63,899 nt of DNA from Octopus bimaculoides (taxonomy: Eukaryota). The stretch's first letter is position 1. Each line of letters begins with the position of its first letter. A program made the translations under genes and the position numbers. The DNA lies in assembly GCF_001194135.2 (NCBI RefSeq), contig NC_068989.1, forward strand, positions 28,973,515 through 29,037,413, given 5' to 3'. The notes under the pieces are model-generated. The model did no database searches. It had not been told where the DNA came from and saw only the letters and a program-made list of their open reading frames with translations. Shown here piece by piece: positions 4,020 to 47,159 of this stretch.

Positions 4020-5222
4020 AGAAGATGCATGGAAGTGCCATTGTGAAAGGTTCTTAAATGTGGAGAATGCATGGGAGAAAGAGAGTTTTCAAATATAAAC
4101 TCAACTAAGTTAGGGATCAGCCATCAGAGTTGACAGCAGTATAATAGCTAAGACAATTAAGAATATGAAGACAGGGAAAGCATGTGGAAAAATGGATGTG
4201 ATATGAAACAAAGTGTTACATATGTATTGACTGTAACCTTCTGTTGCTACCATTTCTTTCTATGTTAGGATATTTTTCATTCACTGTTATATTATGTTTG
4301 TTAATCTATCATGAAGTTGTTTATATTGTTTTAGTTTTTGTCATAAAGTCCACTAATATCTGCTGAGATGCAATAAAGATAACATTTAACTGATGATTTA
4401 TTTGAACCTGTTCTTTCCATCTCTTCTAATGCTATCACATTGGATTGGTAGCAGTGGGCATAAATGGCATGCAATATTGAGTTACATTATGAGTTCCATT
4501 TCTGAAGAGGTCAACTTTATATTAAAACGATAGGACAGGACTCATCATTTAACGTCTTTCATGCTGGCATGGGTTGGAGGTTTGACTGGAGCTGGTGAGC
4601 CAGAGGATTGTACCAAGCTTCACTGTCTACTTTGGTCTTTTTTTAATGGTTGGACACCCTTCCTAGCGCTAGCCACTTTACAGAGTGGACTGGGTGCTTT
4701 TTACATGACACCGTCACCAGCAACATCTGCTTTGGCATGGCTTTTATAATTGGATTGCCCTTCCTAAATGTCAACAGAGTGGACTGGATGCTTTTTACAT
4801 GGTATCAGCAGGAGTGAGATCACCAAGGCAAAGATCCCTCGAGAAGGGGTAGTAGTATTGACGGAGGTGGCTTTGTGCCAGGTGATGAAAGGTTAGAATA
4901 TTACCTCCATATTTGTTTCTAAGGCATCATCTTGTAATAGCTATTACTACACCAGTCATTGGGGATGACATCTTCCTGGATAGCCTGACTAACTATACGA
5001 CTGATTAGGACATATCCACCAGGTATTTTAAGCATCTCAGTGGTGATTCCTGATGGTCCAGGAGGCTTTCCTTGTCTTCATATCCTTGTCTTAGCTATTA
5101 TACTGCTGTCAACTCTGATGGCTGAACCCTAACTTAGTTGAGTTTATATTTGAAAACTCTCTTTCTCCCATGCATTCTCCACATTTAGGAACCTTTCATA
5201 GTGGCACTTCCATGCATCTTCT
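4020..5222. mobile_element. RTE LINE fragments in opposite orientation plus an RTE-type 3' tail (~4545-4850, -)
   Basis: 4020-4181 (+) encodes GSAIRVDSSIIAKTIKNMKTGKA; 4920-5222 (-) is the same RTE segment continuing into GPSGITTEMLK. Confidence 0.75.
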
Positions 5223-5773
5223 CTGAACCTGTAAGTGCAAGCATACCAGTCATTATTCATTTGCACACATTTCTCACCCACAACATTTTGATATTGTTCC
5301 AACAAGAAATAGAAATAATATAATAGAGTTATTATATTTGGATCTCCTTGAGGTTAAAACAAGTTATTTTGCTAAGTTAAAATGATTATCCACCAATCCT
5401 GAACTTTAAATTGTTAACTACTGCTCTCCAACCCTTTTCAATACAATTTCCTTATGTTTGTAGAAGACAGTATTTGATACACTAACTGCAGCATGAAATA
5501 TCAATAGTTATAGCTCTACCCATCAATGGGATTACAAAGAAAAACATTTTTAGGGTTACTCTAATTTGATTAATAGCAATTTAGTTTTAAATTTCAAATC
5601 TCTTTTTTAATAGTTTACATTCTATGAATTGGTGTCAAGTTCTTTTGCCAAAATGGGAAATTGTGTATGTGTGTCAGAGTATGATTTTAACATATATTCT
5701 TTAGCATGCCTTTGTTATATCATTGGTGAGTATCTGCGTAGCATTAACAAGTCTTTCTCTTTCTGCATTTCAG

Positions 5774-5881
5774 TCTGTTGCAACAGAACGAAAATATGAT
5801 ATCTTCTATGTTGATGGGGTTATTTCAAAGAACCGGCGGCCGAAACCAAAGAATCGTTCCTATTCCATATATTCTTCATAA
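5774..5881 (+). CDS. KDM4: KDM4-like terminal coding exon
   Basis: Pyrimidine tract + CAG at 5771-5773; SVATERKYDIFYVDGVISKNRRPKPKNRSYSIYSS*; continues in frame and mirrors KDM4A ...KSRL|SVASDMRF. Confidence 0.8.
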   Translation, partial: SVATERKYDIFYVDGVISKNRRPKPKNRSYSIYSS

Positions 5882-8800
5882 CTTTTAACATCATACCCAT
5901 GTTCACTAATTACTTTGTAACATTTCCCATCAGTTTAATATTTAAATTTTGACTATTTTTGCTCTAATTTTAGTTCTTTTGCACCCCTGTTCAAACTTTC
6001 TATTTGTTTTGTGTACATTTCAGTATCAGTGGGAAGTTCAACAAATATATAATAGAGAGACTCCACCTCTAATTTCCAACACCTGGTTTTGCATCTTCTC
6101 TCTTCCACATGTGCAGAGAAGACTCCCCTCCCCCTTTTTTTATCTCCTTTTCAATTGGCTCTGTAATATTTATGTTGTACATCATAGCCATGTGCTCATT
6201 GTTTAACTAGCAATACAACTATACAGAACTGAAGTTAAGATGATCACTGATTTATTGCTCAACCACAAGTCAATCATTTCTTTGGATCAGGACTCTTAAA
6301 AGACCTTTTGTAAATTTGTAGAAGAAATATCTTGAGTGAAAAGAAAAAGAAAAACTCTCTATTACAAGAATCCCTCCCTCTTCATTATATAAAAGGCAGC
6401 AACATCATTACCAGTTCATTCCACATACATTTCACCACTTCCCACATCTTCTGACATTTGATGCTGCTTCAACCATATGATGTGCATGTGTAAATATAAC
6501 TGTACTCTTTCTCAAGAAATGAAGCATTGTTAATAATTTTGAGAAAACTCAGTTTTTATTACAAATAATAACAAATATGGCATTGTTAGTGTAGCAAACC
6601 CAGGTTAATAAATTTTGAAGCAAAAAAGGCAAATATCCTTGAGGTATATTAGTGTGAATTATGTGGCAGTCTATCCTAAAAGAGGAACCTGCTTTGAAGG
6701 AAACCGATTTCTTCTCACAGCACACTAACATGCCTTCTTTATTTTTCTTTTGTGAATTGATTCTTGCCAACTCAGACCACTACTTCTCTCTTGGAATTCT
6801 AGTAATTATATTTAAAGTTGTAACTTTTATTAGAAGAGGGATACATTTAGAAAAATTCTATAAACAAAATCAATTAAAAAGTGTGATGAAAATTTACTCA
6901 AGAGGTTCTTTTTCTTATTAGTGGTCAACCTTCTGAAAAAAAAAATAAAATAAAAATAAGGCCCACCAATTCTGTATTCTCAGTGCTGATGGTTTTATTG
7001 CTAAAAATATTAATACAAAAAAAAACTACTAACCACAAAGATCTTAACAGAATGTCTTGTTTTACCTTAAAAAAAAAAAAAGAAAAAACATTTGATATGT
7101 TTCTGTGCTTTCTTGTTTTGTTTTTCTACATTAAGGAATAACAAAACAAAAACAAAGTGAGAACAGGAATTTTTCATTAGACTCTGCCTTATATGGCAAG
7201 AGCACAATATTGTAGTACAGCTATTTGCAAATCCCAACTCTAACTATTTCACCTCACTTTTGTTTACTAATATCACAATTTGAATAATCTCTTTCCTTAA
7301 AGACCAATTTCACACAACAAACTGTTGAAGTAGTGAGGGTAGAGAGAGAAGAAACAGCAAAAGGGCATGTTTGTGAGTCATTGATTGTCACATGTTTGTA
7401 AATTTTGCCAATCAACTGACTGATCTTTTGAATGCTTTCTGTTATGTTTGTGTGCACAATACCCCAGTCTGAGCTTTATGTGAACTTTGTAGGGGTCCAG
7501 CAATGTATCAGTATTTCTTGGCTACACTTATAAAAATGTATTAGTGAGATTAGAAATTGATAGGCATAACATTTGTAGCAAATTTTAAGATTTTACTATG
7601 TAAAGTGTGTATGTGAGAGGGAGAGAGATACCAGACCATGTCTTGCACTTTGTGGCATGAATTGTCTACCTATGTAAGGTTGGCACTTGTCACAGGTCAA
7701 TGCTGATTCAATCAAATGTATTCCAGTTATGACCAACCTATCTTTTTGCTTCCTTCATTAGCTAATGTGTCCTTCCTGTTTTTAAGAAAGTAGCATGGAG
7801 TTTTGGCTGTTCTGTCTGGCACATCAGGCAATTATGTAGAAGTTCTTTTAGTGGTTTGAAATAGGTGTTGTTAAGAAGACATCAAAGTTGTTAGCATGTT
7901 GGGAGAAACCACAATTATTAGCAGAGAGACCACTACTAGCACAAGCTAGCAGAGAGGAGTCACAGGACAATCCAATGGAGGTTCTCCATATGGTCAATAG
8001 TTTTGATGGTATTGTTTTGCCACTGTTGTGGGAAAGAATGAGAGGTGCTTGAAGTTTTGGTGGTGCTAAAAGGTAGAGTGGTTTGCAGAATCAAAGATAT
8101 TCTCATTGTTTCTTGCTGGAGGAAGAAAAAGTATTGAAAAGTATTTTGAGGACAGAAATAATCTCCAATGTGTATAATAGAAAGGACACCTGCAAGTTTG
8201 GCCTCTTAATAGGGTGGGGGTGATTAAGGGTATAGTGATATTACATTTGAAATAGGTGCGCTTGAAGCAAAATGGACAGCAAGTGTGGTAGCTTCATCAG
8301 GTAGGAATATTACTGCATAATTAGAAGAGGCCATCATGCCGATTGATCAGGTTTTGTTGCAATTTGGAGGTGTGGCATCTTTTGCTTTTATGATTGTCAT
8401 TGTTACAGTGGAGGTAAATAACTTTCAGTTGTTAAATTTAACATGTGTCCTTATTTTCAGACATAAAGTAAATCATCTTGTACATCCTTTCATTTTTAAG
8501 ATGATAGGATATTTTATTTAAGAGATAATGTGGCTACTGTTTTTAGCACTGGTAACTTTATTCAATGACAAAATTATAGTATCACAGACAACATTAAAGA
8601 GTTATGGACTAGTAGAAATTGTTGAGTGACTGACTAAATACTTTGAAGTCCTTAACTCCATTCTTTTGTGTTTTTAACTGGAATTTGTTCAGGGTTCATC
8701 CCTTTAATCCATAGTTATTGTAGTCTTAAGTTAGTCAAACGCACACATGATGTAAGTCATTCCAGCTGTCTTTGGCCAATGGCTGTTATTTCTGGCAAAT

Positions 8801-11800
8801 CAAACAACAACAGAAAGGTGACAAAATAGGTTTGAGGAATTAAATACTGGTGACCATTTTCTGGACATTCTGTTACCAACACAAGAAAAATCATTAATTA
8901 AAAACAAACTAAAACAAAATTTTCTAGAAAGAGAGACAACAAAACAGAAAGTAATTGGTACAGCATGACATGTTTATTTCAACTTTGAAATCACTTCTTC
9001 AAATTATCTCCATCCTCTTTTTCTGCTATTAATTTTTTCCCTCCCAAAAGTCAATTTCTAATAATAAAAAAGAAAAGAGAGAAACTTGAGTACCATTTGT
9101 CTTTAACGGACATTTTGCTGCCAAAAATTTGAGAGAGAGAGATGGTACCCCCCCACCAGTTAAGACCAAAAATACAACGGGTTTTCAAATAATAAACTAT
9201 AACAGCTTGTCTGTCAAATTAAATAAAATTTAAGAGGAATAACAAAAGTTCTTTTTTTAAAGAGAATGGCATTTTTGCTTTAACTAATTAAATTGAGAGC
9301 ATCTGATCAGGTTTGTCTGATTGTTGTTGATGGGAAAAAAATGTATAATAATATATATAATTATATAACAATGTATTTACATATGTAAAATATAGAGAGC
9401 TGTGTAAGCAACCAGATCTTGACACATACACTTTCTCCCTCTATTTTTATATATGTGCAAACATAGAGAGAGACAATAATTGGGGAATGAGTTGCAACAA
9501 ACATCCATACAGCACCTCCATGTCTGTGCACGCACCTCACAATTTCATTTACACACACACTAAAAGTGTAATAGTTGTCACACATACATACACACAAGCT
9601 CCAAGACAGTAGTGGTATATCCCTTAGTAAATGTTTTTGTTTTACTTAGTTATTTTAATGAAATATTTGTCTTACAAAATTTAAAAGGATTAATTTATGG
9701 CCCTTAGGATTAAATGTTAAAATAAAATTATTTGAAACAAGTAAAATCTAATATTTTTGTTTCCTGCAATTTTATCTCAATAAGTGTTTAACAATCTAAT
9801 GGAATGAAGACTGAACATTTTGTTAACGATATACATGTATATATATATGTGTGTGTGTGTATACATACATAGATAGCTATATATGTGTGTATACATACAA
9901 ATATGCATATATACATATATGTATACATACACATACATATATAATTTATTCAACAACTGTATATCACAGCCTCTCCCATTTAAGAAATAACAGTAACAAA
10001 AACAATGTTAACAGCATTTTCATCTAACTTAGATCTCTCGGAAGACTCCTCTTCACATGGTTGGAAATTAGTTGTCAATTAAACTTAAGACAAATTAATG
10101 AGTTTCTATACCTTAAGTTTTGGTATAGGAAAAAGGGAATGGAGGGAGAGGGATATATTCCATGATAAAGGCTGCCTGGGTTTATTTAGAGAAAAAGCGA
10201 GACTCCTGGTGAGGTGGTAGGCAGAATAATATTCTCCCTTTCATCAACACATCACACTGTTTTCTTCAAAGTGTTATTATTTAAAGGACACCTGACTCAT
10301 ACAAATTTATCAAAAACGGTTTGCAAGGCAAGGTTGTTTATCTGTTGTCCTAAGGGAGCAGAATGGAAGGACAAAATGGATTTTAAAGATTCACCTTCCA
10401 AATCTTCCAGGTTAGAAAAATCACAGGAATGAAATTAACTTTTAGTTAAAAATAATTCTCTTTTAATTTCCTTTAATTTTGACAAAAAAAAAAAAAATTA
10501 AAAAAATTATTTTTAAAATTTGTATGCAGCAATAACAATAAAATTAGTGGACTGTTTTTTTTGCATTCCAAATAAATCATAACATTAGTGCAGCAGGCTG
10601 AGGAAGGACACTGAGGGCCATCTCTGCTTGCTGCACAAATATAACAAAGATAAGAAAGAAGAGCAGCATTGAGAAGATGATAGCTGAGTGAGTTAGTAAA
10701 TTAGTACTGCTATGAGCAGCAATCTGTAGAGTAATCAGTGCTTTGATTGGCACAACATTTTTCATTATCACTTCTCCTTTCAAACATTTGGAGAGAAAGA
10801 ACAGGCAAGGGTACCTTTAGATGTTTAGAAAGAAAAAAAATACTAAATCTATTTTACAATGAATAACAATAATAACATTATTATTATTATTAATAAAAAT
10901 AATGACATAAAATTGAAAAGGTATCTTGCCCAATGGTTATAATGATACTAGAGCCATTCTTAACAGCAAACAATAACTGATTCTTCGTGTAGAATTTTCC
11001 TTTTCGCTCTTGATTGTTTTGTCAGAAAATAATTTGAAATGTTTGTCTCGAGGCACGTTATTTCTGAACCTTCCATTTTCACTTAATTCCATTTGCCTCA
11101 TGGGTAAACAGAGTACAACAAACACACATACACACGCAAAGAACTTAGGGGTTCTTTGTCTCATCAGCATAAATGCTAACAGAGAGTGAAATGAAATGGT
11201 TTGATTTATTACTTACATTTCTCACCTTATTTTAAAAAATATACTTGGTATATTTCTTCTATCAAATTAGACAACCAAAGTGTTGAATTGTTCAGTGAAA
11301 GAATTGGCAATAATTGGGAAGTTAACTTTCTTAGTTTTTGTTTTTATTTGTTTACTTCTAAATATTTGGCAATTTTATTTGGGTTTTAGTTTTTTAAAAT
11401 CATTTTCTGTTAAATATAAGATTTGGAGAGTAGAAAAGAGACTGGAGTGGCATTTCTTGTAAGGGTGAGGGATAAAGTGGGGTTGGATATTGTTTCAGTG
11501 ATAGATATAATACAAATCTGTTTTATGGAGAGATTTAGGTGATCACAATTTCATCATCAGAATGACCAAATAGCTGAAGCATGAAATATTGATAATTGTA
11601 GCTGAACCCAATGATGAACTAAAAGAAAAGTTGGATTACAAAGAACTGGAGGAAGGCAGTGGGCAGCTTAAGAAAAAGAGAGAGAAGGTGTTGATTGAGC
11701 TCTGTTTAAAATGTTTGAGATATTGAGTTCTTGGAAGAATGCCGAGGCAGTCCAGTCAAACAGACCTCTGTAAAGAAGAAAAGTTAGAGAGAGAGAGTTA

Positions 11801-11989: not shown

Positions 11990-12005
11990 TCATGGCCGAT
12001 GAAAC
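11990..12005 (-). CDS. PHACTR: PHACTR terminal coding exon (R)FHRP*
   Basis: Minus strand ttttctttccag|G TTT CAT CGG CCA TGA; phase 2 matches the preceding exon; FHRP* is the canonical PHACTR C-terminus. Confidence 0.92.
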
Positions 12006-12454: not shown

Positions 12455-12810
12455 TGTTTCAATCATTTAGACTGCAGCCATGCTGGGGCACCACCTTCCA
12501 TTTTTAGTAGAATGAATCGACTTATTTTTTTAAGCCTGATACTTATTCTAGCGGTATCTTTTGCCGAACTGCTAAGTTACAGGGACGTAAACAATAATGC
12601 TGGTTGTCAAGTGGTGATAGAGGGATACAAGCACAGACACACACACATATATAAACAATGAGCTTCTTTCAGTTTCCATCTACCAAATCCACTCACAGGC
12701 TTTGGTTGACCCGAAGCTATAGTAAAAGACACATGCCCAATGTATCACACAGTGAAACTGAACCCAGCAAAGTTGAGGTTGAGAAGCGAGCTTCTTCACC
12801 CAGCTACTCC

Positions 12811-12816
<6 letters not shown>
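12455..12816 (-). mobile_element. tRNA-derived octopus SINE, near full length
   Basis: Reverse complement of the element at 33945-34340 (head gcacaggagtagctggg..., tail ...gactgaaac). Confidence 0.8.
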
Positions 12817-12846
<30 letters not shown>

Positions 12847-12959
12847 TATATATATATATNNNNNNNNNNNNNNNNNNNNNNNNNNNNNNNNNNNNNNNNN
12901 NNNNNNNNNNNNNNNNNNNNNNNNNNNNNNNNNNNNNNNNNNNNNNNNNNNNNNNNNNN

Positions 12960-13002
<43 letters not shown>

Positions 13003-13661
13003 CCAGAGAAGTAAATTTAACATGTCTTTAGTGACCAGTTACAATTGTTTCTGTACCAACTCTGCTTGCAACGCCAGTTAATGATAAAGTTCGAAGTGAT
13101 AATTTATGCAATATTTGTGGTTTTAGACATTTGAGTGGCACTTTATCAGACATGCATCAAAGGTCTTTCCCATTTGTCTCTTTAATGTTGTCACTAGTGG
13201 TAAACTGAAATAGTTCTATACTCATGAAATTTGATACTGGTGACTACATACTGGCCATTCCGAAAATTTACCCCTATCTTTCATCCAAACACACTGATTA
13301 GCTCTCTTTTGCTTTTACTGTACCTCCTTCCTCCTCACTTTCATATTTGTCGTAATCATGTCCTTGTTTTCTTTCTTCTTCTTCTATATCATTTTCTTTT
13401 CACATGCTCTCTATACTAAATATTCAACCCCCTAACCATACTTTTATTTGCATTTTTTTTTTTACTCCCGATATAAGCAAAAACAATATCTGGAAGTTGC
13501 ACAGTGTAAGAGCAGACTTTTAATGCAAGTCTGATGAAATGCCACTAATGTCTAAAACTGCAAATATTGTGTAAATTTTCAACTGGTGGTGCAAGCAGAG
13601 TTGGTACAGAAACAATTGTAACTGATCATTAAAGATGTTTTAAAGTTATTTCCTTCTCTTC

Positions 13662-14345
13662 ATCATCATCATCATCGTTTAACGTCCGCTTTCCATGTTA
13701 GCATGGGTTGGACAATTTGACTGAAGACTGGTGAGCCAGATGGCTACACCAGGCTCCAATCTAATTTGGCAGAGTTTCTACGGCTGGATGCCCTTCCTAA
13801 CGCCAACCACTCCGAGAGTGTAGTGGGTGCTTTTACGTGCCACCAGCACAAGTACCGGGAAGGCCACACTGGTAATGATCACGCTCAAATGGTGCTATTT
13901 ATGTGCCACTGGCACGGAAGCCAGACAACTGCTCTGGCAACAATCACACTCAGACAGTGCTCTTGGCGCTCCACTGGTAGTGCCATCACGATTTCGCATT
14001 CACTTGCCCCAACAGGTTTTCGCAAGCCGAGTTCAATGTCCAATGAAGGAGACGGCATGGGTGCCAGTCGTCGAAGTTAGTTCGATTTTGATTTCACTTG
14101 CCTCAACAGGTCTTTGCAAGTGGAGTTTAGTGTCCAATGAAGGAAAGGTACACATAAGTGGGCTGGGTACACCCCTGGCAGAGGCCTTGGATTATGATCT
14201 CACCTGGCTTGCCAGATCTTACGCACAGCATATTTCCAAAGGTCTCGGTCAGAAGTCATTGCCTCGGTGATGCCTAATGTTCGAAGGTCGTGCTTTACAA
14301 CCTCATCCCAGGTCTTCCTGGGTCTACCTCTTCCACAGGTTCCTT
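13662..14345 (-). mobile_element. 3' end of RTE LINE with (GAT)n tail
   Basis: On -, GRPRKTWDEVV-like ORF end, then 3' UTR aggaagggcatccagc...catggaaagcggacgttaaacgatgatgatg; same tail at 24000-24160, 46586-46782, 47870-48015, 61630-61830. Confidence 0.8.
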
Positions 14346-15399: not shown

Positions 15400-18200
15400 T
15401 TCGTATACAAGGTCTCCCCAGCCAACACCTTCCACATCCCTAGAGTTGGCTCATTGGAAGGTAGGTCTGGTGAGATTGTTGAGATGCAGATTTGTGTTGC
15501 ATCCAAGAAGTAAGGTGAAGAAGAAGGTCTGCTAGGTTTCTCACAAACAAAGAACATAGGTATAAGATTTTCTGGGCAGGGAACACTGACGGGATCGGGG
15601 GCATGGGTATATTTCTTGCAGAGAAATGGTTTGATAAGGTATTTGAGGTAGTCAAAGTCTGTGATAAAATACTTAAGCTTAGACTAGTGCTGCAACCATT
15701 ATCTCAGCCAGGGCTACCTGATGAACAGAAAGACCGATTTTATAGCACACTTGCAGACTACCTTGTCGATGAATGACAGGGACCTTCTCTTTGTGGCTGG
15801 TGACTTCAATGAGCATGTTGGACAACATCCAGGGAGCTTCCATGGTGTAAATAGTGGCAATGGTTTTGGTTCCCGCAATGAGGATTGACCAGTCTGCTGG
15901 AGTTCTGGGTAGGGAACACTGATCTGTAATACTAACTTCAGGAAACCTGCCACTCACCTGTTCACCTACCAGTCTGGTGAGCACACTAGTCAGATTGACT
16001 ATATTCTCATCAGGAAATAAGAAAGATGGCTACTTATAAATGCCCAAACTTTCCCAAGTGAAGAATGCACCCCACAACATAGGTTAGTAGTTAGTGACTT
16101 CAGGATCAGGGCTAAATGGCTGCCCAGAAGATGACCAGTGTGGAAAAGAAGGGCCTGCAAGCTTAAGGATCCTCTGAATGGACAGAGATTTAGAGAAATT
16201 ATGTCAAGATTCTAATGAAAAAGTGGCGGATATAGCATCACATAATGTGGAGGACAACTGGAGGTTCCTACAGGACGACCTGTTGAGGGCTACTGACCAT
16301 ATCTGTGGCCGGTGCAAAGCCCCCTCTTGACCTAAGGTGACATGGTAGTGGAACAATGTAGTTGACAGGGCCATTAAGGAAAAGAAACAGGCATGGAAGG
16401 ACTGGAAGTGTGGTGGTAGCAAGAAACTGTATCAGATTGCCAGAAGGGAAGCTAGGAGAGAGGTTTACTTAGCCAGAGAAGAAGCAGATAAGAAAAAATT
16501 TGCCAACGTTCTGCGTCATGAGGGCCAGAGACTTGAAATGTTCCAAATTGCAAGACAGTGTGTGAGAAAAAATTGCGATGTCATAGGAAAGAAATATATC
16601 CGCATGGATGATGGGTCACTTGCATTTAATGGTGCTGCAAAGAGAGAGTCTTGGAGATGCTATTATGAAAGTTTGCTAAATAAAGAGAATGAATGGGAGA
16701 CAGTGTCAAATGTTGACCCAACAAAGGGACCAGCAATCGAAATCAACAGTACCTTAGTAGATAAAGCAATTAAGGGTATGAAGACAGGTAAGACCCCAGC
16801 CCATCAAGAATCACCGCTGAGATGCTTAAAATATCTGGTGGTGTAGGGTAGTCACCTGTATAGTTAACTAGGCAATACATGGAGTCAAACCCAATGATGG
16901 GTGTAGCAGCACCATAGTCAACTGCTACAAAGGTAAAGGTGAGCTTTTAGATAGAAATAATTACAGAGGTTTCAAATTGTTGGATCACGTAATGAAAGTA
17001 ATAGCCCAACTAATTAGGTAGAGAATTAGTTAAGATGATATGCAGTTTGGGTTTGTGTCAGGGAGAAGCACCACTGACGCTATATTTCTGATAAAACAGC
17101 TGCAGGAGAAATCCCTAGCCAAAGATAAACCTCTGTGCTTGGCTTTTGTTGACAGGGTACCTTGATCCCTTATCTGGTGGTCAATGTGGAAACTAGGAAT
17201 AGAGGTGTAGTTTGTGAAAGCTGTACAGCGATGCTATCAGTAAGGTGAGGATTGGCAACAACTATAGCAAAGAATTCCAGGTAGGAGCTCATTGCACTCT
17301 TGTTCATCATAGTCCTCCAGGCAATAACAGAGGAATTCAAGACAGGCTGCTCTTGAAAGCTCCTCTATGCTGATGATCTTGCTCTAATTGCTGAGTCACA
17401 ACCAGAACTAGAGAAGAAATTTCAGGTGTGGAAGCGAAGTCTAAAATCGAAGGGCCTCAGAGTTAACCTAGCTAAAACCAAAGTCTTAGTAAGTAGGAAG
17501 GCAGACAAATCACAGATCCTTTCAGGTAGATGACCCTGTTTGATCTGTAGAAACTCCATAAGATGTACCCAGTATAAGCTATGGACACATAAGAGGTGCA
17601 GCAATATCAAAGGAAGGTTAACTTGGAAGATAGTTTTTGTGTGTGGAAGATGCACAGGTGCAATAAACACTGAAAATGTACAGAAAACGGATTCCATCAC
17701 ATGCTTGGGGGAAAACTAGAAATAGTTGATAGTTTCCGTTACCTAGGTGGCCAAATCAGTTTTGAAGATGGATGCTGCTAGAATAAGAATAGCCTGGGCA
17801 AAGTTCTGAGAGAAAGGTAGACTGTATGATGCCTGTGTGCAAACAGCCGTATTACATAGCAGTGAAACATGGGCTGTGACTGCTGAGGACATGCTTGAAA
17901 GAAATGAAGTTAGTATGCTCCGCTGGATGAGTAATGTCAGTGTGCATACACGACAGAGTGTAAGCACCCTGAGAGAAAAGAGAAGCATCAGATGTGCTGT
18001 GCAGGAGAGATGATTGTGCTGGTATGGTCATGTGATGTGTATGGATGAGGACAGCTGTGTGAAGAAGTGTCACACCCTAAAAGTAGAGGGAACCCGTGGA
18101 AGAGATGGGATGAGGTGGTGAAGCATGACCTTCAAACGCTGGGCCTCAGGGATGCAATGACAAGCAGCCGAGACCTTTGGAGATATGCTGTGCAAGAGAA
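15400..18200 (+). mobile_element. Decayed RTE-clade LINE (AP endonuclease + RT)
   Basis: APE motifs (FVAGDFNEHVG; YQSGEHTSQIDYILIR), RT motif LLYADDLALIAESQPELEKKFQVWKRSLKSKGLRVNLAKTKVL, RTE-type C-terminus; many stops and frameshifts. An older fragment lies at ~14950-15260. Confidence 0.9.
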
Positions 18201-19042
18201 GATCCAGCAAGCCAAGTGAAATCATGGTCGTGGCCAATGCTAGTGTTGCATAACTAGCTCATTTAAAAGCACCCTTCAATCGTTGGGTGATATGCCATGC
18301 TTGTGTAGATATGTTGAACCGAGTAAAATTGTAGTCGTGGCAGATGCCAGTACTGCCTGACTGGCATCCATGCTAGTGGCTTGTAAAAAGCACCATTTGA
18401 GTGTGGCTAATGCCAGTACAGCTTGACTGGCAACCATCTTTGTCAAAAAAAGCTTTTAAATGTCTCTGAATTAAGAAAAACTTAACAAAACTTAAAAATA
18501 TAAAGCAGATGAGATGAGCACATTTTGGTGGGTTGACGTCATCACTATTGGTCTATGGGTATTCTTAGAATTCACTCTACTTCTAATATTTGCACCAAGT
18601 GCTCTCTTGATAACATGATGTGCTGTATCCTGCTGCAGCACAATGCAACATTGTGGTTCCTTTCTCTCCAGTGATGTGAATTTCTACTAAAGAGATCAAA
18701 TGTTTACTGTAGCTCTCTTAATTAAGTCTGTTACCCAAGATAATTTTGATATTTACAGATGGAATACTGTTATATACTTTATGATTAGGAACATGAATTT
18801 ACAATTTGACTGATTCAACTTCAACACTTGTTTGGTACATCATTGGTTCACAACTAGGTGGGGGAACTCAATAAAAAGGAGAAATCATGAAGCATATAAC
18901 AAAGTTTTGTAGCTAAATGTCAACAGATATTTATCTCATAGAATAACGGGATGTTAATGGAAAGGTGACAGGGCTTCTAAAAAGGTAGACTATAGAGAAG
19001 TCAAGAAGAAATATTCTGAAATTAGCTAATCTAACTAATTAC

Positions 19043-19119
19043 CTTGTTAAATGTCGACTATCTTCATGGACTTCCATTTCTTTACTTTTGTATTCATTTA
19101 ATTCCTTTCGGATGGCAGC
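19043..19119 (-). CDS. PHACTR: PHACTR exon, PP1-binding C-terminal helix
   Basis: tttcag|[25 protein letters not shown](R)|gtaatt, 77 nt; close to vertebrate [26 protein letters not shown]. Confidence 0.95.
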
Positions 19120-20356: not shown

Positions 20357-20523
20357 GTATATATATATATATATATATATGTATATTTTAAATTTCTTAA
20401 TAAAATGTAGCCACTACAAAAATGAATGTTGTTGATGTTAGTATATTGCTACAATCAGCACAAAAGACTGGTAATATTTAGGACAACTTGCTGTTATTAG
20501 TTGAAAAACTAGCATTACTTTAC

Positions 20524-31807: not shown

Positions 31808-32949
31808 TATATATATATATATATATTAAATATATATATATATATATATAACAGTCTTCTTCAGTTTCCGTCTACAAAATCCACTCACAAGGCTTTGTGC
31901 AACCAGAGGCTATAGTAGAAGACACTTGCCCAAAGTGTCATGCAGTAGGACTGAACCTGGAACCATGGAGTTGGGAAGCAAGCTTCTTATCACACAGCCA
32001 ATCTTGCGCCCATATATACATACATATATATATGCACAGATATATATATACATATATAAATACATATATACACATATAAATACATATATATATACATATA
32101 TACACATATACACACACACATATATATATTACATATTTATCAGGATGAATTTATCTTCAACCTTTAATAGGAATTTGTTGCGTACATTTCTAATGTCTTT
32201 TCTTCATATGTTATTTACGAATTTTTAAATCGTATAGGTATGAAAGTATGTAAAGATATAATCAATATCAGACTTAATTTATGAAAGAAAGTTCAATAAA
32301 TTTCATCAAATAAATGAAATCAAGTAGATAGGATGTTAAAATGGAGTATGCTTTCATATTTCCAGACAATAGTTTCACAGAAAAGGACCAAGATTTCCAT
32401 AAAGAGAACATCATAAAGGTCAATTTTGTACTCTTCAGTAGGTGAGATTTAAAGGAAAATAAAAATAAACAAAAGACATCTAAAATATACAGAGAATTTT
32501 CTCTTAGTTCTCATTATTATTTAGGTATTTGTATATTCATACTTCCACTCACAAATATTTGTACATTCATACTTATTTCTATATCCATCACAACTATTTG
32601 TATAATCATACTGCCACACACAATTTTTTGAATCGAGTCTCAATTCAAATAATTGTGAGTGGAAGTATGAATATACAAATACCTAAATAATAATGATAAC
32701 TAAGAAAAAATTCTATGTATAATTTCAATGTCTTCTTGTTTATTTTTTTAATTTTTCTTTAAATCTCACCTACTGAAGAATACAAACTTGACCTTTATGA
32801 TGTTCTCTTTATAGAAATCTTGGTTCTATTGTCCAAAACAATTGTCTGGGAATAGGAAATAAAAGCATAATCTATTTTAATATCCAATCTGCTTCATTTC
32901 ATTTATTTGATGAAATTTATTGAACTTTCTTTAATAAATCAAGTCTGAT

Positions 32950-32997
<48 letters not shown>

Positions 32998-33161
32998 GTG
33001 TATATATATATATATGTTTATACATACATATACATATATTTACACATACATACATATATCTATTTATACGAACATACATATGCATATATTTATTTATACA
33101 TATACATATATATATATATATATACACACATACATACATATATATATATATATATTTATTT

Positions 33162-33203
<42 letters not shown>

Positions 33204-33237
33204 TTATACATACATATATATATATACATATTTATTT

Positions 33238-33280
<43 letters not shown>

Positions 33281-33944
33281 TACACATATATAATTACTAT
33301 CCCATGAAAACTCCTGCCTTGTTCGTCTGACTTCATCATGTGTTTGGTGATTAAACTATTTGTTCCTTTCTACTGATCATATTATATATGTTTGTAATGG
33401 CTTTTATGTAAGTCTCCTAATTATATACCCACTAGAAACTATAAAATCATATATGTAATAGTGCCTGTAACATTGCAATTCCCACTTATTTACTTTTTTA
33501 AAATTTTCGTTGCGTCTTGCAACCTTTCCAATAGTTGTTGAGTCTGTTATTCAATCTGCGTTCTTTTTGTTTGTTCGTGCACATACTCACACACGTATGC
33601 ATGCAAGTGTGTGTATGCATGTATGTATGTGTGTGTGTTTGCATATATACATATGTATGTGTGTATGTTTGTATATATGTATTCTGCATATTCATGTGTT
33701 TCTGTTTTTATGTGTGTCCATGGGTTTTTGTGACTATGTACTGTGCTTCTATGTATGGATGTGTATCTCCATATGTGTCCTTGTGTGAAGTGAAGTGTGT
33801 GTGTGTATATGGTCATGCATTTCAGTCTTCATTTGTGTATGTGTGCTTGTCCATATAACCTGTGTACCTATCCGTCTGTATGTGTATCTGTTTACTTTCA
33901 TATCCATATGCCTACATACATGTGTATATAAATATATACATATA

Positions 33945-34476: not shown

Positions 34477-35712
34477 CTATTTAGTACTGGGGATGTACTC
34501 CTGTATTTGTGTGAGTGTTGGGTCCTTTGGATGCTTGAATAAAATGTGGATGTCAAGTTGACCCAGGTTGCCTCTATGTTGATCCTTGGCATGTTTGTAG
34601 AGTATGAAGGACTGTTTTTTGTCGTCATATTGTCTCAAATGTTCATTTAGTATTTCCACAATGCCCCTAGATGTCTCCCCTATGTATGTCATGTTCATGT
34701 CTTTACAAGCACCTTCTATGCATCTTATGCTGTAGACTACATTTCTAGTTCTACAGTTCATGCCAGGCTAATCCTATGTACCATGCAGTTATCATTGGTG
34801 CATAGGGTATTCTCAAAGGGGTACATCCTGCATAGTTGTAATCTGATGGAATTCCCTGGCTTTTCAACAATCTTAATGTTGAGTTTGGTCTCCTTCAGAG
34901 CTTTCTTAAATCTACGAGATAGTTCTCCATGGGCTGTGGCCTCTACAAACATCACTCCTTGATATTTGTGGATTTTATACTACATGTTTGCCTTTTTTGC
35001 TTTGTCACAAGCTCTTGTATCCTATTCCATTCTTTGCTTCAAAATCTAGGGCAGGTACCACTGGTATCATTACATATAATTTTATCTAACTTCTTTGTAG
35101 CACCCCTGTATACTTGAACCCTATCTTTCTGATCGTATCCAGAGAATTGCATGCAGTGCATGAAGTTCTGTACATGTTTCTTTATTTCATAGGGTTTGCA
35201 TAGTGGGAACACGTTGTTCATTATCCTAACTAAGTCTGCTATCAGTATGTTAATTTTCATGTTATGTGTCAAAGCTGAGTTCTTGTGAACAACATATTTT
35301 GAAGCTATGGGTTTCATGTAATAGGAGTGGAGGAGGAACTGCACTCTGTTGTTCACAGTCTCTAACCAAAGTTCAGTATCAAGGACAGGGAGTCTATTGT
35401 TGGGGTAATCTATAGTTACCTTATGTTCCTCTCAGTTTCTACATTACTGTTACTAGAGTTGGTCTTAACTATGATATTAATGTCATCTACATACCTACTG
35501 TAAAGTAGAAGAGTTGTGGACTGCTCTACTAAGGATTGCTTAAGTTTTCTGTCCCACCAGGTCATAAAGAAGCAAGCTACATCTCCAGCTACACCGACAC
35601 CAATGGCTGTACCTTGAACTTGCATGTATAGTTTCTTGTTAAACTTTACAATGTGGTTCTTGAAGGCGGTTCTTACATTAGCCCCTATTGCACGTGCAAT
35701 CATTCCTTTCAC
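34477..35712 (-). mobile_element. Penelope-like retroelement (RT followed by GIY-YIG endonuclease), 5' truncated
   Basis: RT: QVQGTAIG...LLYSRYVDDINII; thumb LPVLD...YYMKPIASKYVVHKNSAL; C-terminal GIY-YIG: CRTRNVVYSIRC...YIGETSRG...NEHLRQ; frameshifts between segments. Confidence 0.88.
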
Positions 35713-35922
35713 CTGATTGTTGTTCTCAGGGTCTTGGGTGGGTACAGTCCAGCAACTTCAGTGCTCTGTGGTGGACAGAGTCAACAACTATTGAAAAGGC
35801 TGCAAGACGTAATGAATATTTTAGAAAAAAAAGAAATAAGTAAATGAATGGAAATTTCACTGGAGAGTGTGTTAAATTATTAGGCACCAAAAGAGAATGA
35901 CTCACCCCAGACACAACAGAAT

Positions 35923-35955
<33 letters not shown>

Positions 35956-36013
35956 CATACATATATATAAATATATATACATATATACACTCATACATAT
36001 AAATACATACACT

Positions 36014-36074
<61 letters not shown>

Positions 36075-36187
36075 ATATATATATATATATATACATACAT
36101 ACATACACACATATATATATATACATATATACAAACACACACACATATATAGATACATATATATATATATACATATGTACATAAGGA

Positions 36188-36513: not shown

Positions 36514-36986
36514 NNNNNNNNNNNNNNNNNNNNNNNNNNNNNNNNNNNNNNNNNNNNNNNNNNNNNNNNNNNNNNNNNNNNNNNNNNNNNNNNNNNNNNN
36601 NNNNNNNNNNNNNNNNNNNNNNNNNNNNNNNNNNNNNNNNNNNNNNNNNNNNNNNNNNNNNNNNNNNNNNNNNNNNNNNNNNNNNNNNNNNNNNNNNNNN
36701 NNNNNNNNNNNNNNNNNNNNNNNNNNNNNNNNNNNNNNNNNNNNNNNNNNNNNNNNNNNNNNNNNNNNNNNNNNNNNNNNNNNNNNNNNNNNNNNNNNNN
36801 NNNNNNNNNNNNNNNNNNNNNNNNNNNNNNNNNNNNNNNNNNNNNNNNNNNNNNNNNNNNATATGTACATATATATATATGTACACATATATGTACATAT
36901 ATATGTACACACACATATATATACATACATATGTACACATATATATATATACATATATATACATACACATACATATATATACATAC

Positions 36987-37114: not shown

Positions 37115-37167
<53 letters not shown>

Positions 37168-38005
37168 TACATACATTCTTTCTCAGTTTATTTCCACGTT
37201 CCTTTCTGTTGAAATGCATAGGCTTGAAACGTAAAAGACTTTCTCACCTTCCTGAGCATCAAAGTAATACACCTGCTTGTTATTTATACACCTGTCTTCA
37301 TCTTTTGTTTTTCTGTAAATTTCAACTATATATATATATATATATGAAAAAATTAAATATTGCAATACAAATGCATTACTTTCCAGTAAAATAAAGCACC
37401 GTAAAGGTAGAAGTATAAATATAGAATAATGGTACAAGGCACCAATTTTTACTGGAAATAGCAGTTGATTAATTTACAACACTATAGTAAAGCTCCACTG
37501 TATATATACTGGCAAAGACCTGTGCAGGCAGTGAACATAAAACTTTCGTCTTACCTCAAGGAGGAACATTAGATAAATGGACAACCCAGAATCAGATAAG
37601 TTAGTACCTAGGTTTCAGAGTCTTCAAATACGATTGTTATCGTAAATTCTTCAGTTAGATTTACTTGGACAATATTTCACTGTTCTTGGTTCTGTTAACA
37701 GCTAGGTGTTCAGGCAAGTATAATGGCACTGATGTAGCAACATTTGAAATAATGTCCTGGTAAATCCAGCTGAAGAAGACTAATCAAATTTATAATAACA
37801 AACGTATTTGAAGAGGCCGAAACCTAGGTACCAGATTATCCGTTTCTGGGGTTTCCATTTATCTAATGTTCTTCCCAGAGGTAAGACGAAATTTTTATGT
37901 TCGATGCCTGCACACATCTTTGCCAATATATATACAGCAAAGCTTTACTATAGGGTTGTAAATTTATTGAACCATTATTCTATATATATATACATATATA
38001 CATAT

Positions 38006-38054
<49 letters not shown>

Positions 38055-38908
38055 CATACATACGTGTATATATTATATGTATAAATATATATATTTATAC
38101 GCATACACACATTCATATACTAACACAGATTGAAGAAATTTTTTAGAATGGCGTTAAAGCATATATCTATTTCTCTTTTTATTCATTTTCAATAGTTATA
38201 ATTTCTTAAAAATTGCTATATATATATATGTATGTATATATATATATGTGTGTATATATATATATATATATTCCTACTTTATATCTTATCTTTAATAAGA
38301 ACTGAGTTAACAGGATTTCACTAAAACAATCAACATATAGGATCTTTCAAGTCTAATGAGAAGTAAGCTAATATGTAGAGAAAAATGAAGAGTAAATTAA
38401 TTCATAGATTCCAGATTTTATAGCTTTGTGTGTGTGTGTGTGTCTGTGTGTGCATGGAGGGAAGTAATTGCTATTTAGTAACTAAGTTTTAACAACATGC
38501 CAAGATATAGAACATTAAAATTATGTATGGCAGGCAACAGAGGTGGTGGTGGGAAGGAAAAAAGGAATTTAAACATTGATTCTCAGCAAATACACCTATA
38601 CTATTTCCTCATATCCCTTACACACACACATTTTAGATGGATATCTCTACAGTGAGGAAGAAGAGAAAAAAAATCTATGAGCCACATATGAAACAACCAG
38701 CACATTGGTACTGCATCATTAGATTCTGACAAAGAAATCTGGCTGCCATTGTTAACTTTAGTCAATTATTTGTTTATTTTATTTTTGTTTTTATATACAT
38801 ATTTCCAGTCGAACATTTTTAGTATTGACAACTATTTCATTCAGGAAATTAAATAAAAGTTCATTATAACCTGAATGCTATTCTGTAATAACGATTAACA
38901 TTTTTTTA

Positions 38909-38958
<50 letters not shown>

Positions 38959-39618: not shown

Positions 39619-39654
<36 letters not shown>

Positions 39655-39871: not shown

Positions 39872-39917
<46 letters not shown>

Positions 39918-44141: not shown

Positions 44142-44175
<34 letters not shown>

Positions 44176-45301
44176 AAGAGAGAGAGATATTTGTTGTGTA
44201 ATAAATGGATTTATAGAATCGCATAGCTATTACAGAAAGCTCCTCAAACGGATTCGGCTAACAGACCACATAGTAATCCAATACAGAGGAGTTTATAAAC
44301 CATAAAAAGTCTGGAGGTATGAGAGGTGAATATAGTTATTTAACCACTTGTCATCCTTAGGATTACAGCTGTTTCACACCATTATGTAATAATAATTTCA
44401 GTGTATAATGAATTATATTTAAATGTCTGCATTAAAATGCATGCTACATATTATACAATACAATTGTATATTTACAAATCAGGGTAGATAAAGCTATCTT
44501 ATTAGATCACCAGAACATTATGGGGATCTTTCTGATTTGGTGGGCGCCACTTGTTTTCTTAACAAAACACTTTCAAACTTGGGACACTGGTAGAATGTTT
44601 CATATAAAACATCTTTTACTCTTAGTGTCATTGAGAAAATTTTATCTTTTTAAAGTTATTTCATGTTAAAATTGTCGCATTTTGGTAATTTCAACCAATC
44701 ACTGAAGTCTATTGAGGTGAAAACAATTACTGCTGTGGAATGTAAACAACACGTTCTAGCGGTGTAATGGGATCTTTTCCCTTAAATAAAATTAGTGCCG
44801 TTGTTTGTCGACAACAACTATCGGCAGTACTATTATTTATGACATTGTTCATGCATTTGTACTGGTTTTCTCTGCTAGTTCCTCAACAGTTACAATGAGA
44901 TTTTGTTCCACCATGGTTTGTAGGACATCCTTGTCGAGATCTACAGATCTTCCAAGATGACATTCATCTTCTAGGCTGTAGTTTCCAGCTTGGAATTTTT
45001 GGAACCACCGTTGTCAATAGCTTATGCTTATTGTTCAATCCCTATACACTGCATTAATATTCCTCGCACTTTCCATTGTGTTGCTGTCTTTATTGAACTC
45101 ATAAAGCAAAATATGCCAAATATTTGTCACTTCCATTATAGCTTTGGAAAAATAACTGTTAAAATCAAACTGCACTCTTCAAAACTTGCTCTAAGAATAA
45201 GGACAAGGTAAAATTACTATCTGGTTTTATAGCAAGTTTATCCTGCCTACCTCTGACTCTTAGTTCATACAATTGAAAACAACAGCATTATTTATGAGAT
45301 G

Positions 45302-45351
<50 letters not shown>

Positions 45352-47159
45352 TTGAATTTAAAGTTAAAGAATGATGGTTTAGAAAGTTGGCATTAAATGT
45401 AATATCCAAACCTTGTTTCAGGGTAAGTCACAGGTAGTGTGTCTGTGGAGTACATTCACCACTTATGGCTACCAGGCATCATCAGTGATACTTTACATTC
45501 ATCATTGGACTATGTCCAGAAATTCAAGGGTTCACGCAGGGTATATTTTAAAGATTAAAAGAGAATACAGAGTGTAACTAAAAGCATTTATAAACACAAC
45601 AATCATTTCGGCTCTATGTTGGACTGCTCCCTAATGTGTGCGGAATGATGCAATAACACCAAATGCAACACACAGTGCAAAAGAGTTTCTTCAGGTGGTA
45701 TAGTATACTTTTGAGTTTACAGAATTACATTTTGATTTTGCTTTAAGATAAATGGTGGTTTTGAAAGATTCTAGCAGTTTGGATGCATGTTTCCTAGTGA
45801 GGAGGATTTGATTAGTAAGAAAATATAAGAATAAAAACACAAATCATATAACATGAATCAGGTGGGGGTATTAATATTTGTGGACATGATGTTATTACTA
45901 TGAATAAAAATAAAGAAATATAAAGAATCTAGTGTATATGGAGGGGCATTAGATTGAGTGGCTCAGCCTGTGTAAGCCTTTGATTTCTAGTGGCTATGGC
46001 AGTAAAGCATAATGCTATGGTCAGATTCAGGCTTTGTGGCTGCGAATGTTTAAACATACGCACAGGCAGACAGACAGACACACATCCATAAGTATACACG
46101 CCTGTATATATTCATATGTATGTGTATCTGCCTGTCTGTGCATGTACATTCATATGTACCCACAGACATCAGTCATCCTACCAATAGGCACAGATATTCA
46201 TTGTTGTGCTTTTTGTTACACTCCATCTTCTCTATTAATCTTTAAAATATACACACACACAACCTGTAGGGACATGGTATTTCATTATGCAACCATAATA
46301 TAAAATATATTAAACATTTTTGTAAGTCAACACTGTGTTGGCAGCACTGTTTACATCATTTGTTAAGGTTATCTCTACAGATATTCTATAGAAATTATAG
46401 CCAGCACTGATTTTTGTTATGGCGTTTCACATCTGAGACACCAGATGTAAACAATGAGCTCCCAGGAATGTGTTTAATATGTAAAATTGGTATATCCAAT
46501 AACATTACACTACTGCATTTAGTGGCTGTTTAAGCAATGTGTTCATGGATGATTAATGGGTTAGAGGGGTGATGATGAAGAAACAAATCATCATCATCAT
46601 TGTTTAACGTCCGACTTCCATGTTAGCATAGGTTGGACGATTTGACTGAGGACTGGTGAAACCAGATGGCTACACCAGGCTCCAATCTGATTTGGCAGAG
46701 TTTCTACAGCTGGATGCCCTTCCTAACGCCAACCACTCAGAGAGTGTAGTGGGTGCTTTTACGTGTCACCCGCACGAAAGCCATCTCATTGTTTGTTTAC
46801 ATCTGACATATTGGATATGAAACATCATAACAAAAATTAGTGCTAACTATAATTTCCATAGAATATCTGCAAAGATAACTCTAACAAGTGATATACATAT
46901 ATGCTTGTTTCTGTATGGTCTATATGTAAGAGTATACAGCTGTGTTAGCGTGGTAGTGTATTTTTTAATATGTTAATGCTTATGTGTGTGTGTGCTCCTA
47001 TGTAGGTGTAAGTATTGATTTGATTTCACTACAGTTCATTGAGAAAGAAAGTATTTTGAGGTGTAGTTAGAGAATGTGATTAAATTAAGGAGCATAAGCT
47101 TTTATGTGTGGTCTTATTTGAAATTTACTGTAGTTAAATTCTATTGGCAAATGTGCAGG

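Follow-up and report, generated by a model that had tools for sequence, protein, structure and literature searches.

The long fold-backs found in and beside the introns of a PHACTR gene in 63,899 nucleotides of Octopus bimaculoides DNA (the window) are, with a probability of roughly two in three, neutral inverted duplications of mixed age, derived from mobile-element insertion and local rearrangement and neither built nor kept for the host genes. The evidence comes from the anatomy of the individual fold-backs, the pattern of decay of their arms and the overall density of such structures in the window.

Structure and setting of the fold-backs

The eight fold-backs of the original prediction (FB1-FB8) were all reproduced when each arm was locally aligned with the reverse complement of its partner, the arms being 75-94% complementary. 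BLAST of the window against itself recovered them with E-values of 1e-21 to 0, and the fold energies of the hairpins are 13 to 49 SD below those of mononucleotide shuffles, so that chance expectation is far exceeded. The list was incomplete: there are two further long fold-backs, here termed X1 and X2, together with several short ones (10446-10516, 25799-25844, 57400-57453 and 61735-61800).

The contiguous fold-backs measure about 170-690 bp. FB3 (20947-21525) is palindromic over its whole length of 579 nt (73-78% complementarity), FB6 (32266-32950) is a palindrome of 685 nt (82-88%, 25% G+C) and FB7 (37468-37967) one of 500 nt (76-85%); FB4 (22235-22583, 349 nt, 75-81%), FB5 (26959-27159, 201 nt, 77-80%) and the AT-rich palindrome X2 (25224-25396, 173 nt) are hairpins with apical loops of just 4, 7 and 5 nt, respectively. 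The remainder have separated arms, i.e. FB1 (4020-4181 and 5065-5222, 883 nt apart), FB2 (12998-13666; arms 12998-13166 and 13514-13666, about 75%, with a loop of 347 nt), X1 (22810-25008; arms 22810-23214 and 24585-25008, 68-70%) and FB8 (46352-46895; arms 46352-46454 and 46793-46895, 82%). Weakly paired centres, proposed for several of the fold-backs, were seen in FB3 (~85 nt) and FB7 (~90 nt), but in FB6 the centre consists of a 34-nt unit that is triplicated on one arm, the left arm having three copies in tandem and the right a single copy.

The proposal that all eight fold-backs are intronic holds for seven of them, which lie in PHACTR introns on an exon map built from homologues; FB1 is located downstream of the last KDM4 exon that could be placed, a Tudor exon at 3122-3217. 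FB2-FB8, X1 and X2 are within the PHACTR transcription unit. The region between the KDM4 and PHACTR stop codons, described as free of fold-backs, is free of long ones, but contains the short palindrome 10446-10516 (79%). Likewise, the arms are mutually unrelated, as had been claimed, but the fold-backs are not entirely without common sequence, in that the loops of FB1, FB8 and X1 hold copies of one SINE, R1, which also adjoins FB2.

Origins of the fold-backs

The right arm of FB1 lies in the interior of a fragment of LINE reverse transcriptase (4880-5304, minus strand; at least 425 nt), the translation of which includes a KxGKPPGPSGITTEMLK-type motif, and which aligns with a second LINE (16561-16990) on either side of the arm. 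The left arm, 94% complementary to the right over 162 columns, is an inverted copy of the inner 162 nt only of this fragment; it has ~70% identity with the LINE at 16652-16791, a similarity that does not extend into its flanks. With its right arm embedded in a longer LINE and its left arm a partial inverted copy, FB1 is thus well supported, on sequence comparison, as an in-situ local inverted duplication of an internal LINE piece. It is the only fold-back in which one arm can be recognised as part of an older, longer sequence and the other as a partial inverted copy thereof, a distinction that in the others would require an outgroup. Twin priming of the LINE was considered for FB1 and rejected: its sense and antisense segments have neither the order nor the extent required, and both arms consist of internal coding sequence.

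Others are different. The inner ~70 nt of both arms of FB4 correspond to an old dispersed repeat, R4, of which four single-armed copies occur elsewhere in the window (59566-59709, plus strand; 59064-59198; 7700-7802; 8494-8549), so by sequence FB4 is an inverted dimer of R4. FB2 has an (AT)20 array on one side and the (CAT)n end of an R1 copy on the other; in four of seven other copies the SINE (CAT)n end and the (AT)n array adjoin directly, and FB2, the arms of which are unlike either neighbour, appears to interrupt a SINE tail. FB5 is flanked by a 12-bp direct repeat (TCTATTCATTTT / TCTTTTCATTTT, 11/12 matching; P=0.007 for a single element, P=0.07 over ten elements). The right end of FB6 adjoins a (CA)n(TA)n array (32948-33292), and that of FB7 is 13 nt from a (TA)n array (37981-38099). 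Overall, three of the 20 fold-back ends are at TA-rich tandem arrays compared with 0.13 expected (P=0.0004), and R4 occurs in one inverted pair (FB4) and two direct pairs, though both this association and these arrangements have other possible explanations. A Penelope-like remnant adjoining (AT)n is also present in the window. Insertion-type origins are thus hinted at for FB2, FB4, FB5, FB6 and FB7; of the two origins originally offered, a common in-situ inversion process or insertion of several transposon families, the former stands for FB1, whereas the latter may apply to these five.

The R1 copy in the FB1 loop (4542-4809, plus strand), a later insertion, matches copies at 13672-13852, 46597-46770 and 47837-48012, as well as several in L001, a 25-kb control locus of O. 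bimaculoides in which the SINE families of the window recur. Later SINE insertions are likewise present in the loops of FB8 (an R1 copy at 46569-46783) and X1 (SINE-type insertions at 23580-24186). Loops are not enriched in SINEs, with 3-4 events compared with about 2.6 expected, on a hand estimate allowing for the lengthening of loops by the insertions themselves. The window also contains inverted SINE pairs, e.g. 31827-32123/33831-34129, and one R1 pair, 13746-13928 and 24007-24186, has a cross-intron geometry. A candidate tail-to-tail SINE palindrome in L001 (11714-11839) proved too weak on re-alignment.

The arms of FB2, FB3 and FB5-FB8 have no second copy in 89 kb of octopus DNA (the 64-kb window plus L001), a result that bounds their copy number at some tens of thousands and so rules out SINE-like abundance only. 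Concatenated reading frames from the FB2-FB8 arms gave no match at E<=10 when compared with 5.8 billion protein sequences. SINE reading frames, employed as a positive control, matched only O. bimaculoides proteins, from 25 gene models; since the control itself reached so few, the negative result with the arms excludes only very high copy numbers. A 24-mer from FB6 gave nothing in JGI metagenomes, where a SINE 21-mer was found in 19 contigs that share a common core of only 34-42 nt and are not octopus; SINE patterns gave nothing in a collection of prokaryote genomes or in a viral collection.

It may be that most of the zero-spacer hairpins (FB3-FB7 and X2), and also FB2, arrived as palindromic units. 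Possible sources are palindromic non-autonomous DNA transposons, or 'twin' insertions in which a 5'-truncated retroelement lies beside its own inverted copy, as in Penelope-like elements. SINE insertions have entered loops at a later stage, tandem duplication has remodelled the centre of FB6, and the arms are decaying by substitutions and indels irrespective of pairing on the transcribed strand. The long introns would be transcribed within the pre-mRNA of PHACTR (minus strand) or of KDM4 (plus strand), where the fold-backs would be expected to snap into long imperfect hairpins of the class subject to bulk hyper-editing by ADAR in octopus; such editing would be a passive consequence and not a function of these loci.

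Decay, density and alternative explanations

Consistent with neutrality, mismatches between the arms are not skewed towards G·U: transitions that are wobble-compatible on the transcribed strand number 72 compared with 81 that are not (p=0.52), in a test that has 153 informative sites, no outgroup and modest power. In total the arm comparisons contain 153 transitions, 137 transversions and 139 gap columns. The lack of wobble bias, the near equality of transitions and transversions, and the many indels together argue for neutral decay. When PHACTR exon peptides were used as queries, no orthologue from a cephalopod was retrieved; the best match was 88% identical, over the conserved C terminus only.

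The proportion of 50-mers in the window with a near-perfect reverse-oriented partner (>95% identical over >=40 nt, within 2 kb) is 0.0058-0.0075, close to the value of 0.0044 reported for the O. bimaculoides genome as a whole, where bulk hyper-editing is attributed to such repeats (PMC5625713). Background density was among the findings that the original prediction had named as contrary to its own proposal, and it is what is observed. The L001 locus contains no comparable long unique palindrome in its 25 kb, and older fold-backs may thus be more frequent in the window than in some other regions.

A competing possibility, unlikely as a general account, is an origin in place for most or all fold-backs, through a template switch in replication or repair that copied unique intron DNA onto its own complement (i.e. 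fold-back priming, for which hairpin-prone TA microsatellites may have been the sites). It implies single-copy fold-backs and an unusually active palindrome-generating process in the octopus lineage. In its favour, FB1 has exactly such an anatomy, nine of the ten long fold-backs are without a target-site duplication, all are mutually unrelated and each is found once in 89 kb, and the 4-7-nt apical loops of FB4, FB5 and X2 fit with snap-back synthesis. Local inverted repeats (10-15) also far outnumber non-TE local direct repeats (3), fold-back ends are associated with TA-rich arrays, and four fold-backs cover 61% of a single 5.4-kb intron. Against this, folding back does not create a direct repeat like that at FB5, FB2 seems to break a SINE tail yet has arms resembling neither neighbour, the arms of FB4 come from a dispersed family, and the single occurrences in 89 kb limit copy number only to some tens of thousands. 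In other animals, moreover, mobile DNA is the usual source of such structures. That the palindromes are assembly artefacts, i.e. chimeric inverted reads or mis-joins at gaps, can for practical purposes be dismissed. The scaffold is gapped, with five runs of N (618-1265, 12860-12959, 27344-27452, 36514-36860 and 49173-49182), one of which sits inside an (AT)n array and ends 39 nt before the left arm of FB2, and an apparent repeat at 12804-13011 was traced to the latter run. However, no gap is within any arm or loop, no fold-back contains or spans one, loops have received independent SINE insertions, and the arms differ at 6-25% of positions, with indels, which excludes a technical chimera.

The proposal that the hairpins are retained by selection as dsRNA scaffolds for ADAR, splicing or back-splicing of PHACTR/KDM4 gains no support, and is very improbable. 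The claim that either strand would fold into long imperfect dsRNA is borne out by prediction, which pairs 62-89% of the bases at z values between -13 and -49; such very stable hairpins in the pre-mRNA, the location of FB3 277 nt upstream of the acceptor of PHACTR exon 20521-20670 and of FB5 766 nt upstream of an acceptor, and the exceptionally high level of editing in octopus (PMC5625713) are all in keeping with a selected role. Sense and antisense fold energies are near equal, the sense strand being slightly the better folded in six of nine cases. By contrast, pairing on the transcribed strand has left no mark on the substitutions, indels are frequent, arm identity declines in a continuum from 94% to 68%, SINEs have disrupted several loops, and the density of near-perfect reverse complements is near the genome-wide value. 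No arm has an inverted match with exons 11992-12004, 19042-19161, 20521-20670, 26098-26193, 50664-50828 or 3122-3217, so intron-exon pairing of the exon-complementary (ECS) type is not apparent for any of them. Both arms of each fold-back are in one and the same intron, an arrangement unsuited to back-splicing, where pairing is between two flanking introns; in circular-RNA formation a hairpin within a single intron competes with back-splicing rather than promoting it. Rfam yielded nothing at gathering score, and at E<=5 only miRNA-family pseudo-matches, far under threshold and driven by hairpins or microsatellites, and interpretation as a miRNA or hpRNA gene was rejected. Molluscs, furthermore, show no dedicated endogenous siRNA pathway (PMC12479628). 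As judged from their predicted folding, the fold-backs are probably substrates for ADAR hyper-editing.

Significance and comparison with known systems

Octopus DNA is already known to hold unusually many local sequences capable of forming near-perfect dsRNA, which are the targets of bulk hyper-editing (Porath et al. 2017, PMC5625713); with the window at about the published density, the present observations have little significance as they stand. What they may inform is the nature of such sequences, which here are mostly contiguous palindromes whose sequence is not abundant, rather than paired copies of an abundant SINE, with at least one made by local inverted duplication. If genome-wide they belong to many low-copy palindromic transposon or Penelope-type families, their description becomes one of routine repeat annotation. 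If most are single-copy in-situ products, a lineage-specific mutational mechanism would feed the ADAR system. The strongest form of the latter proposal, improbable on present evidence, is that fold-back template switching, maybe seeded by TA microsatellites, is an active, orientation-specific mutational process in the octopus lineage that makes long palindromes of unique sequence in situ, and that this process, and not repeat families, supplies much of the exceptional amount of intronic dsRNA that accompanies the exceptional hyper-editing by ADAR.

Cephalopod genomes are dominated by DNA transposons and LINEs (PMC6962438), and palindromic MITEs are an obvious comparison, e.g. the ~200-bp, heavily hyper-edited, Harbinger-derived repeat of Xenopus tropicalis. 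Palindromic repeats of this type make dsRNA without a neighbouring inverted copy (PMC5625713). The fold-backs resemble them in being small, non-coding and mostly intronic, with terminal inverted repeats and, in some cases, very short loops. They differ in that no fixed-length target-site duplication, no common terminal motif and, in the 89 kb compared, no repeat copies could be identified; the sole flanking direct repeat is that at FB5, though a 2-bp TA duplication would be indistinguishable from the palindrome itself, and FB6 and FB8 end in TA. The ten fold-backs would require ten MITE families, and FB1 and FB4 are built of retroelement-type sequence rather than TIRs. Derivation from the Tc1/mariner copies in the window, the terminus of which is TA followed by CAGGGGTTGGACAAAATAATGG, was rejected, since none of the fold-backs has a similar end.

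Further comparisons are palindromes formed in situ, such as the palindromic AT-rich repeats of human (PATRR11, 22 and 17), and palindromes that have been stabilised by rearrangement following a break at the centre. The fold-backs are similar in being unrelated palindromes of several hundred bp, some of them intronic, with a rearranged centre in FB6. They differ in that an in-situ origin is apparent for FB1 alone, and AT-richness is not a general feature, with only FB6 and X2 AT-richer than their surroundings.

Penelope-like elements produce complex insertions, in which a 5'-truncated copy is accompanied by an inverted one and pseudo-LTRs can be direct or inverted, with a bias for (TA)n targets (PMC8557442). 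The fold-backs are likewise twinned in inverted orientation and have no classical terminal repeats; TA-rich microsatellites adjoin three of their ends, R4 is present in inverted and direct pairs, and there is a Penelope-like remnant in the window. By contrast, no arm has homology to a Penelope-like reading frame at the protein level, each fold-back adjoins a microsatellite at one end at most, and equal arms with loops of 4-7 nt are unlike the products of two independent truncations. No hammerhead ribozyme was detected in the window at gathering score or at E<=5, but Naiad-type Penelope-like elements do not have the motif, so its absence is compatible with this type (PMC8557442).

Inverted Alu/SINE pairs in the introns of human and other metazoan genes, the principal substrates of ADAR hyper-editing, are considered neutral by-products of repeats, with ADAR editing as a bulk response (PMC5625713, PMC9989829). 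The fold-backs are alike in forming intronic, intramolecular, long and imperfect duplexes. However, whereas in an Alu/SINE pair two members of an abundant family have inserted independently, with hundreds of nucleotides between them, the octopus fold-backs are for the most part contiguous palindromes of non-abundant sequence.

Reality, extent and setting of the fold-backs

The eight long inverted repeats (fold-backs FB1-FB8) of the original prediction are all present where it placed them, i.e. FB1 (4020-4181/5065-5222), FB2 (12998-13166/13514-13666), FB3 (20953-21177/21265-21520), FB4 (22247-22396/22430-22578), FB5 (26959-27159), FB6 (32266-32950), FB7 (37468-37967) and FB8 (46352-46454/46793-46895). 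Their arms are 75-94% complementary, indels allowed, and, as had been proposed, are mutually unrelated on comparison, and the set is heterogeneous; predicted RNA energies lie 13-49 standard deviations under those of shuffles, whichever strand is folded. The 6-25% divergence between arms, together with their indels, rules out assembly chimeras as the source. All fold-back arms and loops are free of the window's five N runs. One of these, at 12860-12959, ends 39 nt from FB2 and is the source of one spurious 'repeat'.

The list of eight was not complete. Self-comparison of the window revealed two further long fold-backs, X1 (22810-23214/24585-25008) and X2 (25224-25396), and four short palindromes (10446-10516, 25799-25844, 57400-57453 and 61735-61800). 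The first of these lies between the KDM4 and PHACTR stop codons, so the proposed absence of fold-backs from that interval holds for long ones only. Together the ten long fold-backs make up 11% of the window, and a single 5.4-kb intron (exons 26098 to 20670) is 61% occupied by X2, X1, FB4 and FB3.

The PHACTR (phosphatase-and-actin-regulator) gene, with RPEL repeats confirmed, is on the minus strand of the window; the exon map includes exons at about 50664-50828, 26098-26193, 20521-20670 and 19042-19161, and a stop near 11992. An exon match at about 60568-60666 (minus strand), inside a large reading frame (60340-60849), is weakly supported. No octopus PHACTR orthologue was found in the protein collection searched. 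FB2-FB8, X1 and X2 are intronic, all in PHACTR; FB1, downstream of the last verified piece of KDM4, the end of its Tudor domain (3122-3217, plus strand), is only putatively intronic.

Proposed constraint on RNA pairing

The hairpins had been proposed to be retained as editing or splicing scaffolds. Where the arms differ by a transition, one strand forms a G·U pair and its complement an A·C mismatch, so selection on a pre-mRNA hairpin would skew transitions to the transcribed strand. Wobble-compatible arm transitions number 72 (plus) versus 81 (minus; p=0.52), and sense and antisense fold energies are nearly equal. Transitions and transversions between arms stand at 153:137, with 139 gap columns. 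Among inverted matches within the window, no fold-back arm is complementary to an exon, and both arms of each hairpin are confined to a single intron. Pairing within one intron competes with back-splicing rather than promoting exon circularisation. With no transcribed-strand bias, no exon pairing and single-intron geometry, the scaffold proposal is unsupported, and we regard a retained function as very improbable. The picture is one of neutral decay, by a test of modest power that used no outgroup.

Two SINE R1 copies in inverted orientation (13746-13928 and 24007-24186; 81% over 184 nt) occupy separate introns of PHACTR and flank exons 20521-20670 and 19042-19161, a cross-intron geometry without counterpart among the fold-backs. 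Such cross-intron inverted pairs are known to favour exon circularisation.

Origins of the fold-backs

The right arm of FB1 (5065-5222) sits within a fragment of LINE reverse transcriptase; the alignment of this fragment with a second LINE copy runs from 5304 to 4880 and so extends past the arm at either end. The left arm is a copy of the inner 162 nt alone, with non-LINE flanks. As an internal coding piece the arm is neither a transposon terminus nor a normal retrotransposition product, and the arrangement does not fit twin priming. Judged from these alignments, FB1 is therefore an inverted duplication made locally; at 94% it is the youngest fold-back, with FB6 also counted among the youngest. 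In FB4, about 70 nt of each arm, beside the axis, is an old dispersed repeat (R4). Single-armed R4 copies also occur as direct pairs, 59064-59198/59566-59709 (370 nt apart) and 7700-7802/8494-8549 (690 nt apart), reminiscent of pseudo-LTR-like partial tandems.

For the arms of FB2, FB3 and FB5-FB8, no second copy was found within the 89 kb of octopus DNA searched (the window plus L001, a 25-kb O. bimaculoides chromosome locus), and arm reading frames gave no protein matches; this excludes only SINE-like abundance. The two commonest SINEs of the window have many copies in L001, and frames across them match O. bimaculoides proteins only, marking the window as cephalopod DNA. SINE insertions inside the loops of FB1, FB8 and X1 postdate the fold-backs, and the same SINE adjoins FB2. 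Apical loops are 4-7 nt in FB4, FB5 and X2; the weakly paired centre described for several fold-backs applies to FB3 and FB7 (85-90 nt, partly paired), but that of FB6 is a 34-nt unit, three in tandem on one arm versus one on the other.

In situ fold-back duplication is shown for FB1; as the sole origin of the whole set, which would likewise consist of non-selected by-products, it is unlikely. Local inverted repeats number 10-15 versus 3 local direct repeats (known repeats excluded). Parts of the data are fitted by two insertion-type models. Palindromic non-autonomous DNA transposons agree in size and structure, and cephalopod genomes are rich in DNA transposons (PMC6962438). Paired insertion of 5'-truncated retroelements as inverted twins is on record for Penelope-like elements, for which (TA)n is also a target (PMC8557442). 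Three of the 20 fold-back ends, the left one of FB2 and the right ones of FB6 and FB7, adjoin TA-rich tandem arrays (expected 0.13, P=0.0004). FB2 is flanked by a SINE (CAT)n end on one side and an (AT)n array on the other, features that directly adjoin in four of the seven further copies of this SINE; this suggests insertion of FB2 between them, though ambiguously, since an (AT)n end is also present on the SINE upstream and the gap falls at this point. Neither a consistent target-site duplication nor a shared terminal motif is present at the fold-back ends; FB5 alone has a flanking direct repeat (12 bp, 11/12; P=0.007 per element, 0.07 across ten elements). Nor did fold-back termini match Tc1/mariner termini in the window, where hammerhead ribozymes were likewise not found. 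Of the origins originally offered, in situ inversion accounts for FB1, and several transposon families may account for others. We favour, with a probability of about two-thirds, a mixed origin, the fold-backs being neutral hairpins of differing age that derive from repeats and rearrangements and are non-selected by-products.

Several other features of the window were observed. The gap near FB2 lies within an (AT)n microsatellite (12816-12999), with (AT)22 to its left and (AT)20 to its right, so it is uncertain how long the array really is and how the upstream SINE connects to FB2. A 5'-truncated Penelope-like remnant (34480-35757, minus strand; weak Pfam RVT_1 match) directly adjoins an (AT)n array (35921-36176); its VVYSIRC...YIGETSR was read by eye as GIY-YIG, Pfam giving no confirmation. 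Two degraded Tc1/mariner copies (30626-31813 and 62404-63640) are in opposite orientation, 80% identical and carry a DDE_3 domain; their terminus reads TA followed by CAGGGGTTGGACAAAATAATGGAAACACC, and a (TA)n array is the insertion site of the first. Old local tandem duplications (70-73%) at 57671-57894/57911-58132 and 60116-60211/60214-60307, the latter just below the 60340-60849 reading frame, are with a gap-spanning pair (343-539/2703-2887) the window's only non-repeat direct duplications.

A transposase-like gene (51971-53600, plus strand) is present as broken reading frames that gave no Pfam match, and no terminal inverted repeats were detectable around it within 49200-57500. JGI metagenome contigs L002-L020 (samples Ga0210059, JGI24021J15306, JGI24022J15233, JGI24158J21664 and JGI24159J19872) encode a transposase-like protein 33-44% identical to it; in L016 and L017 such proteins belong to elements that have long terminal inverted repeats. 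These contigs (36-43% G+C) are rich in long whole-length palindromes (600-2400 nt, 62-86%), and share with SINE R1 (46694-46734) a common core of 34-42 nt only.

Inverted-repeat density and probable dsRNA editing

Porath et al. (2017) measured what fraction of random 50-mers has, within 2 kb, a reverse-oriented partner that is >95% identical across 40 nt or more; the O. bimaculoides genome-wide value, 4.4e-3, ranked among the highest for the 19 species compared and was tied to exceptional hyper-editing (PMC5625713). The same statistic is 0.0075 in the window (0.0058 once simple repeats are removed), i.e. about the genome-wide level, and 0-0.0009 in L001, which has no long unique palindrome in its 25 kb. 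Density thus varies locally, one 25-kb control being too little for a claim of enrichment.

Porath et al. also noted that editing of a palindromic repeat need not involve a partner (PMC5625713). The fold-backs, transcribed within long introns, are probably bulk ADAR substrates. The residual interest lies in whether octopus dsRNA-forming loci are mostly unique in situ palindromes or repeat families, bulk ADAR editing of such sequences having already been described for octopus.
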